A stretch of 64,000 nt of DNA, from the NCBI GenBank assembly GCA_023515725.1, contig JALDTO010000179.1, forward strand, positions 62,001-126,000, in the 5' to 3' direction. Every line of letters begins with the position of its first letter. Position 1 is the stretch's first letter. The DNA comes from Amoeboaphelidium protococcarum X5. Taxonomy: Eukaryota; Fungi; Aphelidiomycota. The notes under the pieces are model-generated. The model did not search any database. It worked only from the letters and a program-made list of their open reading frames with translations, and was not told the origin of the DNA. This document shows, in pieces, positions 22,504-34,558 of the stretch. The position numbers and the translations under genes are program-made.

Positions 22504-23010
22504 TCACTAACTAGTTTATTATTGATCACAATAAATTGAATTAAAATCTAATATTCAAATTGAATACCAACTCCACAATTAATATTAATGAGATGGTAGA
22601 TGGGCGAATGTGATGGCAGCAAAGTTCAGGTGATCGCCGCTGCCTTTAATTGTTTTTTGCTTGTTGTTTTGATGAGAAAGTCCTCGCGATTGCCTCAAAA
22701 TGACGTTAGAACACGCGGATTTATCATCACCTCAAAGCCGTGAGAATTTCGACAACCTTATGACTAACGCACCGACAGTAAACAGTAAAACAGTAAAAAG
22801 CGAGAGCGCGAGAGGAGGAAGAATGAAACGCGCTCGTGTCGATAATACCAATGACAACGACGACACAAACGCTGAAACAATAGAACACTGTAATCTTTAT
22901 CCCCCACTCACATCCGCTATTATTTATTTAGTGTAGAATAGGCTTCGGAATTCTAACAAGGCCAGCAATCTGATATAAAAAAGAACTCATTTTTAGAATA
23001 ACTACGAGAC

Positions 23011-26000
23011 ATGATGGATAAGTGGTTGAAGATTAAGCCCAAAGCTGTGACTGGTGAGGGACCACAACAACTGGGCGCTGAGAAGAAAAAGGATGGTCGC
23101 GGTGGGGCTAGACTTAATGCCGGTAGGAAGAAGAAGATTGTGGAGGAGCCAAGGTAAGCTAATTATATAATTGCATGGTTTTTAATACTGCAAATGTAGA
23201 TTCAAGTTGCCAGAATATCGTGGAGGGAAACGCGCTGGTGCTGGTAGAAAGTCCGCTGCAGATTCTACTGACAATGATAGATAAGCTTCCAAAAAGATCA
23301 AAGCAGTCGTGGCTGATGATATTGTGGACAATGATGACTAAAATTAGCCTAATATTTTCATCAATGTCCCGATTGTAACCTCTGAAGCAGCTTCTGCGGA
23401 CAGTAGATTGTAGGCAACGCCCACAGTTGAAACAGCTGATGCTGTAGATTAGCCCCCCTTGCTTTAACCAAATTTAGCTCCGGTGTTTGGGACTTTATCT
23501 GTTGGAACATCTAGTGATGAAAGTGCGAAGATTGATCCAGTGTCAGATCAGGGAAGAGATATTGATGATCCGTAGGACGGCTCTGACCATATTTTTGAGG
23601 AGTTGAACTGCGGCTTCCGCTCTGACGTCTAATCTAATCAGGAAGTAGATGAACTGTCTGAAGAATTTGAGGATGATTTGGCTTAACCTAAGGCTGGCTC
23701 TGTTGTTGCAGAGTATCTTGCTTCCGTCTTTACCAGAGTTAAAGATCGCAACAGTAATGTAATGAAAGCTGTGAGAGGTGGTAGTTTTTGGATTGAACCA
23801 CCTAATCCTCTTGTGGCAATAACTAAGTCTATCAATGATGGACTTTAAGTGAAGCCAAATGATTTTTACTATCCTAGAGTGTTTGTATTTGTACCTGATG
23901 TGATGTTTCCTCATCTAAAGATCCCATGTCCGAATGCTTCATGCTCATCTGCGTCAGTGGTTCCAAAAGGGTTTCCCGACTATATGCGAAGAATCGTTGA
24001 CTTAGAAGATTGTTATTACATCGCTACATGCAGGTATTAATGCAAAGATTGTAATACTCATTTTGTGCCGACGTCAGCGGATGTTTTGCGCTAGTTTCCA
24101 TTAGAGGTTTAGTTTGCATTCCCATGCTTATTGTCGAAGCGCTCTGGAATTGATTTGAAGATTGTAAAGATGCTTAACATCTTTATTGATCAATCAATGG
24201 GTCCTTAAGCTGTAGCAGACTATCTAAAAGAGTTGCATTCTTTAAAGCATCAAGAACTGGAGGCTCAATATTACTCTGCGTTAAATACTTTGAAAGCTGT
24301 ATATGCGTCGTAAACGAGACTCTTTGCGTCTAAGATTGACTCTTCCGCTGTTCAATTTTCAAAGTTCGCCGATCCCAATGGGTACTCTGGATTCACACCT
24401 TCTGGCAACTATTTGCTATCCGTCTTTCTGAAAGATTATTAAAGAAAGAAGTCTTACTACGATCTGGAGGTACAAAGAAGAGGTGGAAAGGTGATTTCGG
24501 TTGACCACAGCTTTAAGTGGACGAAGCACTTAATGCAAGTTAACGGGTAGTAGTTATTCGAAGGATTGCACTCAGTCATGAATGAATATGAAGAGATTCG
24601 CCAACAATCATTGGTATAATCAGTGTCCAACGACTATCTGAGGGATCAGATGGAGAACATGTAGGAGACGTACAATAATTTGGGGCATTAACCGCCCGAA
24701 CTGGTTTACACGGACAATTGCTGCAACGATAGAGCTTTCTACGAATCTGTATTTCCAAGCCTTCGTCATTCTACATAGCTGATATCTGAATTCCCTAATC
24801 CAAAGCAAATTATTTACCTCAATGATTATTCATCTGCCTGTGCTTCTGCTTTTGAGTTATTTAATAGATGCGTATCCTCCAAAGATCAGGTGAAGATTGG
24901 TTTGGACTGTGAATGGACTATTAATAATGTTGGAAAGGCGGGTAAAGTGGACCTATTGCAATTGGCGTTTCAAGATGGCGTTGTTTACTTGTTTCATCTC
25001 ACTTCTTTCAAGCAGATTCCTCCAAGTCTCAAATTACTTTTGGAATCGTAATAATGTCTCTTCATTGGTAGATCTATCGGCGGCGATGTTAAGTATTTGC
25101 TATAAGATTTTAACATCCGTGTCAGTCAAACTCTAGAGTTATCGAAATGGGCTAAAGACGTTGGACTTGTTAAAAAGGCTACGCTGAGCCTGGATGCTCT
25201 CGTTTAAATAATTCTTGGCTATTAGCTGGAAAAGTCTGCCAATGGGCCTCGATTGTCAATTTGGGCGAAATCTAAACTTACATAGGAGTAGTAAATCTAT
25301 GCCGCTAAGGATGCGATGGCAAGTCTTTTAGTATATCTGCAGCATATTGATAGAGAGTTTGATATTTCTTCGTGCGTTAACTCTGATGATTGTTGCAGTC
25401 CTATTAGTGATGGATCGGAGTTTAACGCTAGTTTGACAACAAGGGTGCTTCTAGATTCATATCATGCCATGGCGAGAATTCCGGTTAAGAAAGGTCACGC
25501 GTTTACGCCTCAGTTTTGCCGTAAATTTAGAGATGCTTTATTTATCATACATCCCTAAGATAGAGCTGCGCTAGAATAGTACGTAAAAGAGAGCGATGAG
25601 TATGAGTCGTTTGATGATTTGATGGCTGCAAGGCCGGATTGGGTTCTCGAGCGATGTCGGCGTGAAATTCCTAGTCCTATGGAGCTCCGCAAGCGGCTTG
25701 AAGCATTGATTGCCGAATATATAAAGGACTGCTATTGTGATCCATCTGATGGTGTCCGACTCCTTGATGAAGATTGTCTGGATGCGTTCAAGAAGCTTTT
25801 TGTTCACGTCGATAAAGGATGCTTATCCGACCCTGTTGGAATCGGATTGTATTACGAGACAGGTCAAGATAGTAATGGGCTGACAACTTATCGATGTATT
25901 AGAGGTACTAGTGATCTAGAAGGGGGGATTCATCAGAAATTAGTGAGGAAATTTAAGACTTGGAATGCCGGCCCTGCATTTGCTGACGCAGCTCTAAGTG

Positions 26001-27091
26001 TAATAAGACACCGATTTAATGTAAGAGCAAGCGAGAGAAATCGTCTAGGCTTTCCTAAGTTAGGACATTATGACCACTTCCTAATAAACCTTGTGTAAAA
26101 GTTTTCCAAGTCTATTTATGGAAGCTCAGTCCACAAGTGGTGGTCTGATTTGACAGATCTCACACTAAGTTCAGAATAGTTCGGAGTTATCCCTTGCATT
26201 CCTCGAGATTAATATGAGAGCGTATCTGAGGAATAGATTAGGCATTACAAGCCATCTATCTAGTATTTGGCAAAGAAGACGAAGTCTGTAGTTCCTTACC
26301 TTCCTATGCTCAATTCTCAAGAGCACTAATAATTTGGAAGTCTTTTAAATTTGCACTTAAGGCAAGTTGGGAGTATCAAAAGAATATCGTTTCAGAAGAT
26401 GGCGGATGAGTGGAACACCGGCTATCGCTGTGCAACTCCGGATGGTCTCACTATATTCAAGAAGATTCCTCGACATTTAGAGCTATATCTTTCTCGATAC
26501 CTTGACATTGTTACACGAAGTTCTGCTCATCGCTTGGCCTCCACCTCGACAGCGTAGTTGAGCGCTTTATTGGAAAGTGACATTGGAGCTATATCACTGC
26601 ACTAATTGAAGCCTGCGGAAGTCGATTAGATTCCTCATAACGCGGTTTGCGTTGATGATAGCGACAATGATAGCCTCAGCTAGACATTGGCGGAGAAGAA
26701 TCTAGTGGCTAATGTCACATGCCAGCAAAGTAGCATAGTAGATTAATAGCTGGTCGTTTAGCCAGTCTCTGTCATCTCTGGATCACAATCATTGTATCGG
26801 AATGCTGAAACCAGCAGTCGGCGCATGTAATTAGTTGCGACGAGTGTATCAGTAAGTAAAAAGTCCTCTAATCAGTCAGTATAGGTAGCACCAAAAGAGA
26901 TTTAAGTTGCGTAACCAAAATCTTTGAGTCTTAAAAATAATAAGCAATGCAAAGGTTGCGGTCTAAGAAGGTATGACAATCCTGGATGTCCCGGTGGAAC
27001 CGCCCGCGGTACTTGCATCGAGAAAATCAAACGTGGAGAAGGGAAGAAGACGATCCAATCAAAAGGTCGTACGTAGTCATCCAGCTCGTGA
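23011..27091 (+). mobile_element. Dada-like DDE DNA transposase gene with embedded DEDDy 3'-5' exonuclease; join(23011..23153,23200..27091), ~1344 aa
   Basis: Cys-rich N domain (IPCPNASC...RYQCKDC), D1 ISVDHSFK (24503), D2 VYTDNCC (24713), exonuclease GLDCEW/GGDV/YAAKDA (~24890-25325), LDSYH DxxH (25454), GCLSDP, RGTSDLEG E (25919) and C-terminal CKGC...C...C. One 46-nt GT-AG intron. Confidence 0.8.
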
Positions 27092-27164
27092 TTTATCCAC
27101 ATCATCATCTCTATAAACGTGAATTTAGTACCGAATTTATTGATTTCTTATCAAAATACTGCAG

Positions 27165-27188
27165 TTTTTTTCAAAATTTTGAAAAAAA
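27165..27188. repeat. Perfect 24-nt palindrome TTTTTTTCAAAATTTTGAAAAAAA
   Basis: Self-reverse-complementary, about 75 nt downstream of the transposase stop. Confidence 0.7.
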
Positions 27189-27776
27189 ATCAAAACCCAC
27201 TGGTGCGTCTATCCTCCCGGAGCCAGAATTTCCCCATGAATCGCGATCGAGAAGGGGTATAGTTCTCTTATATATTGAGTGTACTTTTAATTTGCAGCCA
27301 ATAAATGATGTAGCTCATAGTTCATATCATCTTATGCCATATCTCTGAATTTTGGTGAAGCTGGATGGATTGGTGTCAGTTTCTTCGTAAGTGGAAGTTA
27401 ACCCACTGCGACATTGTCCCAACTGTTAATTAAGCATAACTAAAGTCAAATTGTCTGTATCTTTGTTGTGTGATGTGAATGGTAGATTCCTGGTTCCCAG
27501 CTGGACAAGTTGCTGTACAACCAGCTAATATCCGTACAGAAGTCCTCGTCACCGCATGTATCCTGTTTATAAGATGTCTCCCGCTCTCTCTTTCAATCGA
27601 TTGCACAAATCTGATGTCCATGACTTTGTAATGAAACACATTAGTTTAGAAGGATTGACTGAAGAATTTATCTGTTCCGGTTCTACTAGGAGTCAAATGA
27701 AATCATTCAAAATCCCAAGTAACTTTTGAGCGCGCTTGCCAAGCCGCATAATTTGAAATTGACCAAGCATTTGAGC

Positions 27777-30700
27777 TCATTCTGATTCTTGAAATCGACT
27801 TTGATTCTTGCTGCACAGATATTTTGGTCGAGGCTCATCGCATATCAGACATATAAGGACCTGTGTAAGATTTTCAGCTGCCATGATATCTCGATGATAA
27901 AACTTGTGGCACTTTCTACAGTACTTGATTCTCATTCCAAAGCTCTCACAAACACAGCCACAACATGGCGCCTTTTAAGAAGTGAGGTGCTCATCTAAAA
28001 AGACAACAGGATAGCCTAGAGACCTCACCTTCTGTACAAAGTGGCGCTAAAATGAGAGATGAATTGTCTATTTACTATCAAATTGAGTATTTCCAATACC
28101 AAACACCACTCGGCCGTTTGACTTCTAAAATACGCTAGCATCAACCATATTTAGAATAGCATTAGTAGCTCTATCAAACTCTGCTCTTTAGGCCTTTTTA
28201 AAGTCCCAATGTCTCTTTTGCCATATTTCAGATGAATAATATGACCTTAAATGCTAATAGATATCAATGTACCTTTCCCAATAGCATTCCATTGACTCTT
28301 CTTCTCCGCGATACATAGACCGTTCTAACTGAGTAATATCAGATGGCCTACCTTGGTGATACTTTCTAAACTTACGTCCAGGCTCATTGACTGCAGAAGA
28401 TTTCAAGGCTAATGCTCTAATAATACGCGATTTTCCATGCCCTTTAACAGCTACAACTCCAGCAGTGTATCTTTCGCCAATGTCAAGACAGCAAATCCAG
28501 TGCTCAGAGAGTTTATCCGGCTGAAGTTTAACAGTGTCAGACACCTGCATTGTACCTTTACTCAGTCTTTTTCTCTAAGCAGCCTCTAGCAAGCCTTCAC
28601 CTTAACTTTCAGCAAGACGTCTCACCTACTACTTACGCCTGATATCAATCAAGTGAACTTTTAAAACTTTACCGTTAGTTATGAAAGTGTTAGATAGTAT
28701 TCTACGCGTAGTGTCACATGCTTCTGGCATATACTGACTGAGCAGCCGCAATCCCTTCTTCAATTTAATACCATAGCATTCTCGTAATGTATGACCTTTC
28801 TACTTTACCAACCCACCTTCACTATAATAACATTGCAGATCTCGAAGAAGCTCTTATTTGCGCTCTTACTCCATCTATGGATTATTATTGATTGAACTCT
28901 AAAGTAGCCTCATCATTGAATTTTCGGTAAAAGTAACATAACAATCTTGCGGTGATGACAAAGGATACCCATATTGACGGTCCTTGGGAAGCAGGTCGTT
29001 CAAAGACTAAAACTTCTAAAACACAGAAGGCATCTTGTCAATTTCCTCAATTCTTCTGCGTAACTCAGGATCATGCTCCAGCACTTGTGCAGCCAACAGT
29101 TCGACTCTGCCAATTACTTGAGAAGCAAACTCAGAATCTAACTAAATAGCAAGCTAGTCCACAATTTCCTTAATGTTTAAAGTGCTATCAAATTTTCTTT
29201 CCAAACTAATCATGATATTCATCTACTATCCAAGCAATTGCCCAAATTTGAGAACAGCGGCACCTTTTTGGCTTGCAATAGATCTCCCATTACGTAAAAA
29301 TCTAATCACGCCTTACCAAAACTTCCTACCTCCCTATCCCGGAGTGTCAGAGTAGCAAATATCATCTAATAAGGAAATTTCATCAGGATATTACTCCAAA
29401 ATAATGCCAATAAACCATTGTACACCTAATTAAGCCATTCTTTTCAAAAGATTAATGTCTCTCACCACTGTCTGAATTGTAGCGGCCAATTAATGTTACA
29501 ACTACTACGACAAAGAACCCTTACTGAGGCATTTTCTCAACGATCCAACCTCCAGAGTAGACATAGAATGAGCACTTTTCAGCTTTGTCATTAGCAATGT
29601 CTCTTCTGTATTATTTCTTTTCTAACCACTTGAACGCGCATCACATTTATCGCGAGTTACAGAGCTGCTAGCACGATAGTTGCCACGTCTCGCTGTCTGG
29701 GAGGACTAAACACGTCTCTTTTTACGCGGAGCTACCTCAATATTGTCATATTAACTAGTATCATCACTCTCCTCCTAGCGTTCTTCATGACTTTCAATAT
29801 CACGGATGAACTTTGGTGTCTATTTCTTTGGCTGAGGTATTTCCGATTTAGACTTGCGATTCCTTTCAACCTCCTGGAAGATATATCGCCCACCGCTTTA
29901 TATTGACGTACCATTTTATCGATCATCAACATACTCCTTCTTATAAAGAGGCAGAAATCTATTGTAGCCTTTCCACCTATCTTGAAGAGATAAATAAGAC
30001 ACCTCTTCACGAGACTTTCCAACATGACGGCTTTAGATTTTCCACTCTTAGTAGGCATCTATTTTTACAGATTTCAGCTAAAGGACGCTTTCATGCCACT
30101 TGGAACAAAGATTCCTTAAGGCATAAACTTCGTGGTACTGACCATGAGCAGCTGTCAATGAGCTGGCAGATATTTCGCGTCGGATCCATTCCAATGTACC
30201 CATAGAGACGAAAACTTCATCCTCCACATGCTTGAACAGATTATCAAGCGAATTCTTTTCATAGTTCGGATCCCCCTCTAGGGACTGAACAATGAGCCTC
30301 TCTTGATTAGAGTCGAACACACGCTAGGCCTGACAGAATATGGGACCAACTTCCATTACACTCTGATATTAACTAACGATACTCTTAACATCTGAATGAC
30401 CGGCTTCCATCAGCTTACGAATGATTTTCAAATTGCGCCCAAAACCGAATCCTTTTACATTGTCAGAGTAATCGTTACCTGATACTACTGCGAGCGCAAC
30501 CCAGGCAGAATTAGTTAGATTCAATTTATCGCAGACCACTTTCCTATCCAGCACAAAAAATTTCATTAATCCGCAGCCAAATGTTGGCTTTGCAGCTACT
30601 AAGACATCCTTATGCATGAATAGATCAGAATCAAAGCTTACTGCGACGACTGGATCTTTACACTTGGCAATGTGAACATCTGCCTCTCCACACGCAACTT

Positions 30701-31223
30701 CAACATTATAGCCCGCTTTAATCAGCTCCTACTGTAGATTTGACGCGTCATCAGCCTTAAAATGCCAAGTAGAGCGCTCAAGCTTTCCAATCATGCACCA
30801 CTTTGCTTTACTCACTTTCTGATCAACCGGCAGATTTTCCAAACAATTACGCAGTTTCAGAATTTGTTTCAGTCTGGCATTGACGCGTTTGAGAGAAGTC
30901 TGAGATTTCTCGCAAGTCTGCTCTCCTTCAAACACCAATGTGACAATGTCTTTTATTGGCCTAGCCTCACCTTAAACCATCACCATTTAATTAAGAGGAA
31001 GCGCTGTCTTTACGAGATGGATGCTAGCCTCGAGGGGATTCTTGCTGCGATTGTAAATCCTGCGCAGATGACGATAGAATGTACCATTGAAGTCTACCAT
31101 AATCTTGAACTGTGATCCTAAAGCTGAGGTGGCCATTTAACACATTCTTTATATATCAACTGCTCTTTGATTGCTAAAGAGGTTCAGCCTTCTTAATTGA
31201 CGATGAACTCCCTTTACACCCAT
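27777..31223 (-). CDS. XPG/FEN1-like PIN 5'-nuclease fused to a Fanzor (TnpB-like RuvC) nuclease, 1148 aa
   Basis: Continuous table-6 ORF. PIN part: MGVKG, MVD, LVFEG, GEADVHIA, SFDSDLF and SGNDYSDNVKGFG (H3TH). Fanzor part: FITNGKVLKV, CLDIGE (D914), VVFGIG, FLDEHLTSQ (E1078), CCGC...CRKC, HRDIMAAEN (D1112) and RPKYL. Confidence 0.85.
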
Positions 31224-31850
31224 GGTCTTCTTCGAGTTGAATATATCTTACACAGGAGTGAATAGAGGCCTGACTCAATTAAAGCGTGTTGGACGCATCG
31301 TATCAACGATGATCTGGCCAATAATGTTAAATCATCCGGTTGAAACTGGATCGTCGACGGTAATTGCGCAAGAAAGCTCATATTCATATTATGAGTTAAG
31401 AAATAAGACTACAATAGGGCAACATTGTTGGAAGATATTTAAAGCATGCTGATGCTGATTGGTTAACGACTTAACATTATTTGCGTGTTAATTAGTGATA
31501 GTGTCAAAGGTAATTAATTCATCCATAGAATCAAAGAAACCATTTTTGTAAGACGTTCATTCGTAAAATCTTTCATCGAATAACAGATCTTTAACTGTCC
31601 CTCCAACTTGAGGAAGGTAGTCTGCCAATTCGCTGTTTCTGTGCTCCTGGTAGAAGTATTAGAAGAGTCGTGATCAGTGAAGTCTAGACAACAATTAATG
31701 AAACTAATCATCATCAACAGTATAAATCGTTCAATTACGTCTTCATATACAATATTATGAGCAATTTACAACCCACAGATCGTGAATGAATATTCACAGG
31801 TTCATGCTTGAATTTCTTCTTTGCGAATGTTATTGTTCTAAATGTAATTA

Positions 31851-32111
31851 TCAACTTTACAAGATGCACATTGATATCAAGGCCGAAAGCTTATAGAGAC
31901 CTTTCGCCTCTGGTTCATAGACGCCGTGATTAGTTAGAGGATCAGCGTCACTCTTAGGACAAACTGAGACAACCACTTCAGTGTTTGGCTTTTCAATTGC
32001 CACAATAAGTGATTGACCCGTAATTGGATTGAATACCTTGTACTTAAATTGCTTTTGAGGCTTGGCCCAAGAAACGGTTTGCACACCAATGATCCCGTTA
32101 AAGATTAACAT
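31851..32111 (-). CDS. Small hypothetical ORF, possibly the first exon of a spliced gene extending to ~31560
   Basis: ATG-initiated frame of about 86 codons. A downstream segment after an AG reads RLFQYFYQEHRNSELADYLPQVGG...ERFYE*. Confidence 0.3.
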
Positions 32112-32992
32112 ATTAGATTTGATTCAAATTTCGCTTTAAATTAATTGAGAAGAAGAAAGTAATTCAGGTGAAATGACGCCTTTTATGGGTGCGTGGTAAA
32201 GCAGCAGTATTTGTTAGAGGCGTTAACGGTCGGTCAAGTTATGAAGATTGACGCGTTAACGAGTGATTGGTGACCATGAGTTTGTCGCCTCTTTTCTTTG
32301 GCGGATTTTTGGAATAGTGAATTTAGAGTAATTAAATATAATATTATCTGGAAATAGTGCTTTCCATGACTGACAAATATGTCCATTGGAACGGTGGTTC
32401 CCGTGTCTCTGCTGGTATTAATAATACGGACAGCCCACGTATCAGTATTGGCTAATGCTTCGTTAATCTCATGTGATTGGCCAATTAGCGAAGCAATTAA
32501 ATCAGTTACCTTATTTGGCACTTGTTACTATTCCTGCTGATTTTAGCAATTTAACATCATATTATAGAAAGGAAAACTTAAGAAGTTTCGATGTTGCAGA
32601 TTGTTTTAAGAGGCAAAAGTCCAATCTCTATTCTAGAAAGCACCACAAGACGGAGAATATATAATCGAAATGTACATTATGTGTATTTAAGACGCAAAAG
32701 TTCATTCTTGTATAGCTCTCATGCCTTCTTACTGCCATTGTAGATCTAGGATATCTGAATTGTTTGTACGCGTCAAGAAATGCCTTGCGGTTGTTTGAAC
32801 TGCGGCGATAACTTGAGTCAACTGATGATAAGAAACGCTAATCCACTGACTGTTTGCGAAACAATTGTTCCGTCCCAAAGCCACATGGCCCCTTCCCACC
32901 ATTATCTTTACACCAAACAGTGGCGCTTATTTGGAGTATTTTGTCTCACGACTCATTATATTTCATTCACCAGTCTGTCTCTTTTCGATATA

Positions 32993-34558
32993 ATGACCAG
33001 TTTAAACTTTATGGATGTGCTGTGGTACTCTGTGTATAGTGCGGCGGCATTCTTCTTAATGCAATTTCTATATGAAGTGTACAAGGGGAAAAGTGTCAGA
33101 AGAGGCGTTCCCGGTCCGGTGATTGTTCCCCTGTTGGATAACTTAATAGAATGCATATTGACACTGGGACAAAGTTTTGACTCGCTAGTGGAATACACTT
33201 TGAAATTTCATGACAAGGTGTACTCCTTGGACGGTGAGGTGAAATACGTGGGAAAACCCAAAACTTGGATGGTCAATCTGCCCTTCATTCCGCGGCACTT
33301 TGTCACCACTGATCCGGAGTGTGTCGAGTTTGCGCTCAAGACAAAATTTGAATTGTTTGAAAAATCTCCCGAATTGAAGCATTTACTCGCCCAACTTCTT
33401 GGTAAAGGGATATTCGCATCGGATGGACCTCGTTGGTTGGCATAGCGTAAGGCTACCAGTTAGATATTTCATGTAAAGAACTTTAGGGAATATTTTATGA
33501 CTGTATTCCGGGAGGGGACTGATTTGCTGATAAAGATTCTAGTTAAAGCTGCGTCTGAGGGAACGGTGGTGGATTTGTATGATTTATTTCATCGATTCAC
33601 GTTGGATTCTTTCAGCCTCATTGGTTTTGGTAAGTAATTACATTGCTTGCAGTCTTATTTAGATGGCGATTTGAGTCCTGTTGCATTTGCTGCGGCTTTT
33701 GATAAGGCTCAGCATATCACTGCACTTCGCACCATGTCTTCCATCTGGCCTATAACAGAGTACTTTGATGGATCCGCGCAGATTATGAGAGATTGTGTTA
33801 AAACGATTAATGAATTTTCATCTCAGTGCATTGAAGAACGTCGTTAGGATCCAGATAAGGATAATAAAGATGATTTGCTTAGTAGATTTATGCGTTTACG
33901 CGATGAAGAGACTGGTGAATTGTATAGCGATCAGGAACTTCGAGACACGATCATGAACTTGATAATTGCCGGTAGAGATACAACTGCATAAACATTAAGT
34001 TGGGCGTTTACTGAGTTATTTAAGCATTCGGAAGTGATTGAGAAGATTCGTGATGAATTTCAAAGTCAAATTACGGACTTCAATATTGACGACTTTTCTA
34101 GACCGAGTTATGATGAAGTGCTCAAGTTGTAGTACGCTAAAGCTGTGTTCAATGAAACTCTAAGATTGCATCCTGCAGTTCCGCGTCAGTCCAAAGGAGC
34201 ATTAGAAGATGTGACATTGCCTAATGGGGTTTAACTGAAGAAGGGAGAAGTGTTTGTATTCTCATCCTATGTCATGGGCAGACTGGAGAGTATATGGGGT
34301 GAAGATGTCCTAGAGTTTAAACCAGAGCGCTTTATAGACCAAAATCACTCCCCTTATAAGTTTCTCGCTTTCAATGCTGGTCCACGACTTTGTCTTGGTC
34401 AATAGATGGCATATTTGGAGGCTATCACTGCTCTGGTACTCGTGTTAGATCAGTTTGATTTTAAGCTTGCTATGCCTGAGGAAGAGATTCAGCATGCCAT
34501 TGGACTGACGTTGCTGATGAAGAATGGACTTAAAGTCACGGTTGAAAAGAGAATTTGA
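32993..34558 (+). CDS. Cytochrome P450, CYP86/CYP704-like fatty-acid hydroxylase type
   Basis: N-terminal [14 protein letters not shown]-helix AGRDTTA, ETLR, FKPERF and heme motif [10 protein letters not shown]. Confidence 0.95.

Follow-up and report, generated by a model that had tools for sequence, protein, structure and literature searches.

The question raised by this locus is whether a eukaryotic transposon carries, in one polypeptide, both an RNA-guided DNA cutter and a nuclease that could process the ends of its cut. What eukaryotic transposons gain from Fanzors is so far deduced from TnpB homing in bacteria, and eukaryotic cells usually repair breaks by end joining, at the cost of the target. 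The window, a 64-kb stretch of Amoeboaphelidium protococcarum DNA, holds on its minus strand a gene that an earlier, sequence-only reading described as a PIN/XPG 5'-nuclease fused to a Fanzor-type RuvC and hidden by the recoded genome; its features, together with those of the mobile element around it, are collected in Table 1.

As for the reading frame, translation table 6 (TAA/TAG as Gln) gives a single ORF of 1148 aa with 46 in-frame TAA/TAG codons and one TGA, at its terminus; the standard code would place 47 stops in this frame, and the whole window reads as gene dense only with table 6. The TAR codons align with Gln at 45 of the 46 positions in an intact sister copy from a second strain, and at 20 positions in a copy of a second subfamily, B, which is 50% identical, so the single ORF proposed earlier is borne out. 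That it was hidden is an overstatement: the window's own protein is present in NCBI as a 1119-aa prediction starting at Met30 (P0024), and the gene is therefore un-annotated, not hidden; its sister copies are listed as hypothetical proteins. A single, intronless transcript is predicted from the open frame and from the colinear, intronless homologues. Three contig runs of unknown kind, ~96% identical, cover non-coding parts and another flank and are uninformative as to expression.

Table 1. Features of the PIN-Fanzor gene and its element, in window positions
Feature	Position	Strand	Basis
PIN-Fanzor ORF, 1148 aa, table 6	27777..31223	-	translation; NCBI protein P0024
FEN1/EXO1/XPG-family PIN 5'-nuclease domain (aa ~1-305)	30309..31223	-	profile, Pfam, NCBIfam and structure searches
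Helical extension and charged, basic linker (aa ~306-540)	29604..30308	-	sequence, homologue alignment
REC/WED region (aa ~541-900) with TNG motif	28524..29603	-	homologue alignment, Foldseek
RuvC-I D914 (DIG), bridge/REC2 helices, RuvC-II E1078, degenerate Zn finger, RuvC-III D1112	27819..28523	-	
Whole mobile element, 5'-TCCTTTC...CTAG-3'	27686..32573	-	copy boundaries; exact junctions read where sister insertions have an empty allele
Candidate omegaRNA scaffold	27684..27750	-	motif conservation, pairing; last TA target-derived
Predicted guide (host right flank)	27669..27683	-	copy comparison; length by analogy to Fanzor1/2
233-bp solo-LTR-like repeat (TG...CA, 5-bp TSD AATAC)	32212..32444	-	copy comparison

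The N-terminal half has the features of a FEN1/EXO1/XPG 5' nuclease: a PIN fold, the seven acidic residues (D44, E99 in VFEG, E180, D182, D198, D200 and D251 in GNDY), a helical gateway with K106 and R113, an H3TH motif and an MGVKG start. The acidic residues and the gateway pair are kept in homologues down to 29% identity, with Asp replacing E99. A profile built from five homologous N-terminal halves matched archaeal FEN1 (E=3e-12) and human EXO1 (2e-9) in the PDB, the window protein matched NCBIfam fen_arch at 4e-5, and Pfam XPG_I (PF00867) was above cut-off in the homologue P0018, whose structure model has the DNA-processing EXO1/FEN1 structures as its closest folds. These profile and structure searches, the conservation among homologues and the purifying selection described below all back the original assignment, and this half is a predicted FEN1/EXO1-family PIN nuclease with its catalytic residues intact. 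The language-model neighbours of the PIN half of P0018 (1-345) are clusters of NCLDV FEN1-like and poxvirus G5 proteins, a lead that would fit the domain having come from a virus.

Beyond the linker, in which PRKKRR may serve as an NLS-like stretch, the protein contains the split RuvC D-E-D triad and the TNB/Zn-ribbon of the TnpB/Fanzor superfamily. In homologues with as little as 29% identity, D914 (codon at 28484), E1078, at the alternative RuvC-II position, and D1112 never vary, and the placement of all motifs from MGVKG to D1112 agrees with that given before. The structure searches used proxies: P0002 was folded for the C-terminal half and P0018 for the PIN half, and P0014 and P0024 served for the sequence scans. 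Foldseek matched the model of the P0002 half (pLDDT 62) best to SpuFz1 (E=8e-7), then to Cas12f, PpFz, GtFz, Fanzor2 and TnpB, and VIA gave Z values of 11-13 against Cas12, TnpB and Fanzor2. The best full-length matches were also Fanzor1, but with a TM of only ~0.3 on a pLDDT-62 model. By sequence, the C-terminal motif had mimivirus Fanzor2 as its best PDB match (E 4e-5), and PF07282 was above cut-off in P0014, which is 95% identical to the window protein; a Pfam scan of the stop-free pieces of the window ORF gave only sub-threshold hints.

The claim of a Fanzor signature stood only by half. The alternative RuvC-II Glu lies six residues before the Zn finger (E1078-x6-A1085), the canonical position reads GIGN, without the Glu, and a TNG conserved in all homologues is, by position, a possible counterpart of the Fanzor1 TDG motif. 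DPG, a motif near-exclusive to Fanzors (PMC10711439), was not found at RuvC-I: the window protein has DIG, and DIG, DFG or DLG occurs across all homologues. The Cys cluster noted after E1078 is indeed the zinc finger region, but a degenerate one, with Ala1085 in place of the usual first Cys (E+7), which is present in P0018 and P0017. As the alternative Glu is there but DPG and the first Cys are replaced by DIG and Ala1085, the protein is Fanzor-like by anatomy and may or may not belong to Fanzor1 in the strict sense; its C-terminal half is probably an RNA-guided DNA cutter of the Fanzor type. In P0018 (L064:567-4412) three Zn-finger cysteines are gone and the 3' motif is another one, but the catalytic residues of both domains are kept.

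The fusion is not confined to this copy. The genome holds two subfamilies of the PIN-RuvC protein, with ~48-50% amino acid identity and both domains in each, and the same architecture occurs in standard-code metagenomic contigs, in the proteins P0002 (1102 aa, 33% identity) and P0018 (1281 aa, 29-33%) and in a gene of L065 that is split by an intron. One cluster of the ESM Atlas (58 eukaryotic 1312-aa TNB proteins, score 0.99, taxa known for three) hints at relatives, with or without PIN, in Mucoromycota. The word-based homologue searches returned few relatives, so that these counts are a minimum for the range of the family, and none was found in viral contigs or in bacterial and archaeal genomes. 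Among recent copies, dN/dS was 0.16 for PIN and 0.16-0.24 for RuvC (Fisher p 1e-5 and 2e-4), and both halves are therefore kept by purifying selection; many genomic copies carry frameshifts. That the two domains belong to one protein, as first proposed, is thus confirmed by the standard-code homologues and by both subfamilies: the fusion is real and conserved across distant organisms, and we could not find the pairing described. No paper on a natural Fanzor-XPG/PIN fusion turned up in a search that lay outside subscription journals and Repbase, and primary Fanzor papers that were examined mention no such natural fusion.

This sequence evidence also decides against an artefact, in which two genes are joined by the wrong code or the gene forms a composite with a Dada-like transposon. 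There are 46 TAR codons to be read through and a DDE-like element is found at a distance of 460 bp, but the standard-code homologues carry the fusion in one ORF, and an 8-bp TSD of its own marks the neighbour as a separate insertion; the spacer between the two is kept in the empty allele, and the composite was rejected. Chance adjacency is refuted on these grounds and is almost certainly false.

The gene sits in a dispersed element of 4.9 kb (~4.65 kb minus the LTR-like insert), a transposon context that the earlier reading had not shown; its copies match from 32573 to 27684 and then diverge, are 92-99% identical and occupy strain-specific sites. The solo-LTR-like repeat lies in the 5' non-coding part; sister copies lack it, and it has dozens of copies in the genome. 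TIR, TSD and a transposase ORF are absent from the element. Empty alleles of two sister insertions are present in the genome, and their flank matches overlap by one T (three empty alleles: C249 and C57; C98, the last read directly); insertion therefore takes place as A^TA, with no duplication, and the termini are 5'-TC...CTAG-3'. A Mariner/SPu-like TIR or TA-TSD was discarded, given that there are no inverted ends and the empty alleles show no duplication.

These ends recall Helitron1, for which the rule is TC...CTRR termini and insertion between A and T (PMC3627910). Subfamily A has TC...CTAG, whereas subfamily B ends in CTTG; A/T insertion without TSD was read at the two sister insertions, and stem 2 of the scaffold described below forms a subterminal 3' hairpin directly before the end, shared with the omegaRNA candidate. 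The empty allele of the window copy (C249) is too diverged at the junction for exact reading, its left end is T|TC, several left ends lack A|TC, and the empty site of subfamily B is consistent with A^T, with altered junction letters. Helitron Rep genes and domains occur elsewhere in the genome, and none of them was seen to share these end sequences; no autonomous Helitron with the same ends was found, and no transposase was found within the 3.8-4.5 kb of the homologous metagenome contigs. Given the CTTG end of subfamily B and the left ends without a preceding A, the Helitron call is likely and not proven: the element is likely a Helitron-ended, non-autonomous DNA transposon. As side observations, a (TA)9 run stands at the left junction of a subfamily-B copy (L037 / G000:C264 ~1836100), and the empty allele in the other strain (L089:800-810) reads ATT where TA is expected, possibly a scar or an escape from the TAM.

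At the right end, a conserved motif begins ~27 nt past the stop codon, on the same strand: stem 1 (GCGGCTTGGCAAGCGCGC), then AGTTAC, then stem 2 closed by TAC/GTA. The genome has 12 occurrences, every one at these elements, against 0 in the control; the motif also directly follows the stop codon in the contig of P0002 (L058) and in L087. The letters of stem 2 differ among subfamilies A and B, L058 and L087, with the pairing kept in each; the probability of the C:G closing pair is 0.8-1.0 in five of six, and L087 has z=-4.8. Folded as a single sequence, the scaffold did no better than shuffles (z -1.0), the z-scores are modest for most, and Rfam gave no match. The flank behind the scaffold varies from copy to copy; the resemblance of one right flank to the left end was dismissed as chance. 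At the level of sequence, this is the conserved structured right end followed by a variable guide that characterises OMEGA systems, and the motif, which the earlier reading had not reported, is a strong candidate for the omegaRNA. Scaffolds of characterised Fanzor1s include target-derived bases as well (PMC13565253, PMC10711439).

In both resolved empty sites of the A family, TATA stands directly before the guide match, and the filled sites have AGTA or TGTA, which could provide a ready self/non-self rule, at two sites so far. The empty allele of the C158/C344 insertion (G000:C98:611213-611237) has TATA and matches the guide of the C158 copy at 14/15 positions, and coexists with the filled allele. 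Three remnants with only the 3' end (G000:C192:885658-886041, C212:302261-302640 and C98:1558910-1559131) keep the motif, with guides of their own, and are possibly ghost guide loci.

Taken together, these data suggest a Helitron-ended, non-autonomous transposon whose OMEGA-type nuclease has a second nuclease built into it, a reading to which we give about an even chance. A host Helitron Rep/helicase would copy the element in trans, and its 3' end, with ~15 nt of flank, would be transcribed as an omegaRNA whose scaffold includes the target-derived TA. The RuvC half would cut empty alleles at an A/T-rich TAM ending in ATA beside the guide match, sparing filled alleles with AGTA or TGTA. The PIN domain, held at the break, might then remove 5' flaps or resect 5' ends, and this processing could lead to homologous recombination from the filled allele, so that the element is restored or spread. 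Fanzor1 in Helitrons and restorative homing are both established (PMC3627910, PMC13565253). Homing is at least not efficient now, because the empty site with TATA and the 14/15 match survives in the same genome, and the frameshifted copies also speak against efficient homing today. Engineered exonuclease fusions lowered the indel activity of MmeFz2 (PMC12923547), which counts against the reading, though indels are not the read-out of homing. That the protein represents a separate eukaryotic DPhiG/Ealt lineage of RNA-guided nucleases, which acquired a FEN1/EXO1 domain and forms single-gene elements whose one protein would both cut at an RNA-specified site and process the ends of the cut to force recombination, possibly mobilising the element without a transposase of its own, is a doubtful, more tentative proposal.

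Other roles for the PIN domain have to be weighed. It might act on RNA or RNA:DNA, trimming the 5' end of the omegaRNA from the mRNA or clearing the R-loop or RNA after the cut: FEN1/EXO1-family enzymes also cleave RNA flaps and RNA in hybrids, and the position of the scaffold, so close behind the stop codon and on the same strand, means that it must be freed from a longer transcript. Fanzors without PIN nevertheless yield mature omegaRNA (PMC10432273, PMC10530073) and the nearest folds are DNA-processing enzymes, which make this role unlikely. The Helitron-type ends and scarless A^T insertion suggest another possibility, that PIN serves transposition by finishing rolling-circle copying for the trans-acting Rep while the Fanzor separately protects donor sites. 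Rolling-circle strand transfer does yield displaced 5' flaps, but host FEN1/EXO1 should supply their removal and a physical link with an RNA-guided domain that persists over large distances suggests action at the guided site; we regard it as quite unlikely.

The missing transposase could also mean that the element mobilises itself, PIN and RuvC nicking, excising or priming the copying, with TC/CTAG as convergent ends. The elements are single-ORF with recent, dispersed insertions, and neither a partner with shared ends nor a transposase in the homologous contigs came to light; on the other hand, we know of no strand-transfer chemistry to new sites by either fold, the guides match only the current flank and the Helitron1 rule is followed exactly at two junctions, which leave this very unlikely. 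Non-autonomous Fanzor elements are, moreover, common (PMC10530073). A RuvC half that binds without cutting, or is silent, would leave the fusion as a 5' nuclease guided by RNA, or as a selfish passenger no longer used for guided cleavage; DIG in place of DPG, the degenerate Zn finger (lost in P0018) and the surviving empty target fit such a state, which is equally improbable given the invariance of D914, E1078 and D1112 and the purifying selection.

Returning to the two-nuclease, Helitron-ended element, the known systems most like it include Fanzor1s (SpuFz1, PpFz1, GtFz1), with which it shares a eukaryotic, transposon-borne RuvC, the alternative Glu before the Zn finger, a predicted enlarged REC, TNG at the presumed TDG-motif position, an A/T-rich predicted TAM, the best Foldseek matches and a candidate structured right-end RNA whose final stem includes the target-derived TA. 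Unlike them, the window family adds a ~300-aa PIN and a ~230-aa linker (1100-1300 aa against 600-800), has DIG/DFG and not DPG, a degenerate Zn finger and no TIR/TSD, and is 12-13% identical. The Chlamydomonas Helitrons CRe-1,2,3 (PMC3627910) likewise have Fanzor cargo in a transposase-less element of rolling-circle type with over-represented 3' ends, but they are Helitron2, with ATIRs, a TTTT target and variable TSDs, whereas the window element is Helitron1-like and carries PIN. Fanzor2 and TnpB with Ealt (ApmFz2, TvTnpB, DPhiG-Ealt clade) offer the same combination of DPhiG and Ealt; the window protein differs in its much larger REC, lack of HTH and eukaryotic host, and no serine recombinase or Y1 transposase lies near its ORF.

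On the PIN side, FEN1, EXO1, XPG and GEN1 (including NCLDV FEN1-like proteins and poxvirus G5) share the fold, seven acidic residues, gateway Lys/Arg and H3TH, but in the window family the domain is fused to an RNA-guided-type nuclease and transposon-borne. Engineered Cas/Fanzor-exonuclease fusions (T5, TREX; PMC12923547) also place an RNA-guided cutter and an end-processing nuclease on one chain; they are artificial and lowered MmeFz2 editing, in contrast to a natural, conserved fusion.

With this fusion the element may be able to process its target site as well as cut it, and a natural, long-conserved 5'-nuclease fusion would directly answer the end-joining problem in evolutionary terms. It makes the homing model testable by knocking out single domains, for which a candidate scaffold, guide and TAM and real empty alleles are available, and could serve as a natural model for an editor that favours HDR or long deletions, where artificial Fanzor2-exonuclease fusions fell short; it would also be a case of Helitron1-type ends doubling as a guide-RNA scaffold.

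As for the surroundings, the DDE/Dada-like element spans 22751-27224, with a 1346-codon frame (23051-27088, plus strand) and the 8-bp direct repeat AGAATTTC on both sides; it is missing in the C249 allele and has a second copy on C264. Beyond the other end of the PIN-Fanzor element lies a gene (32759-34555) that, from its translation, is a putative CYP86/704-type cytochrome P450.
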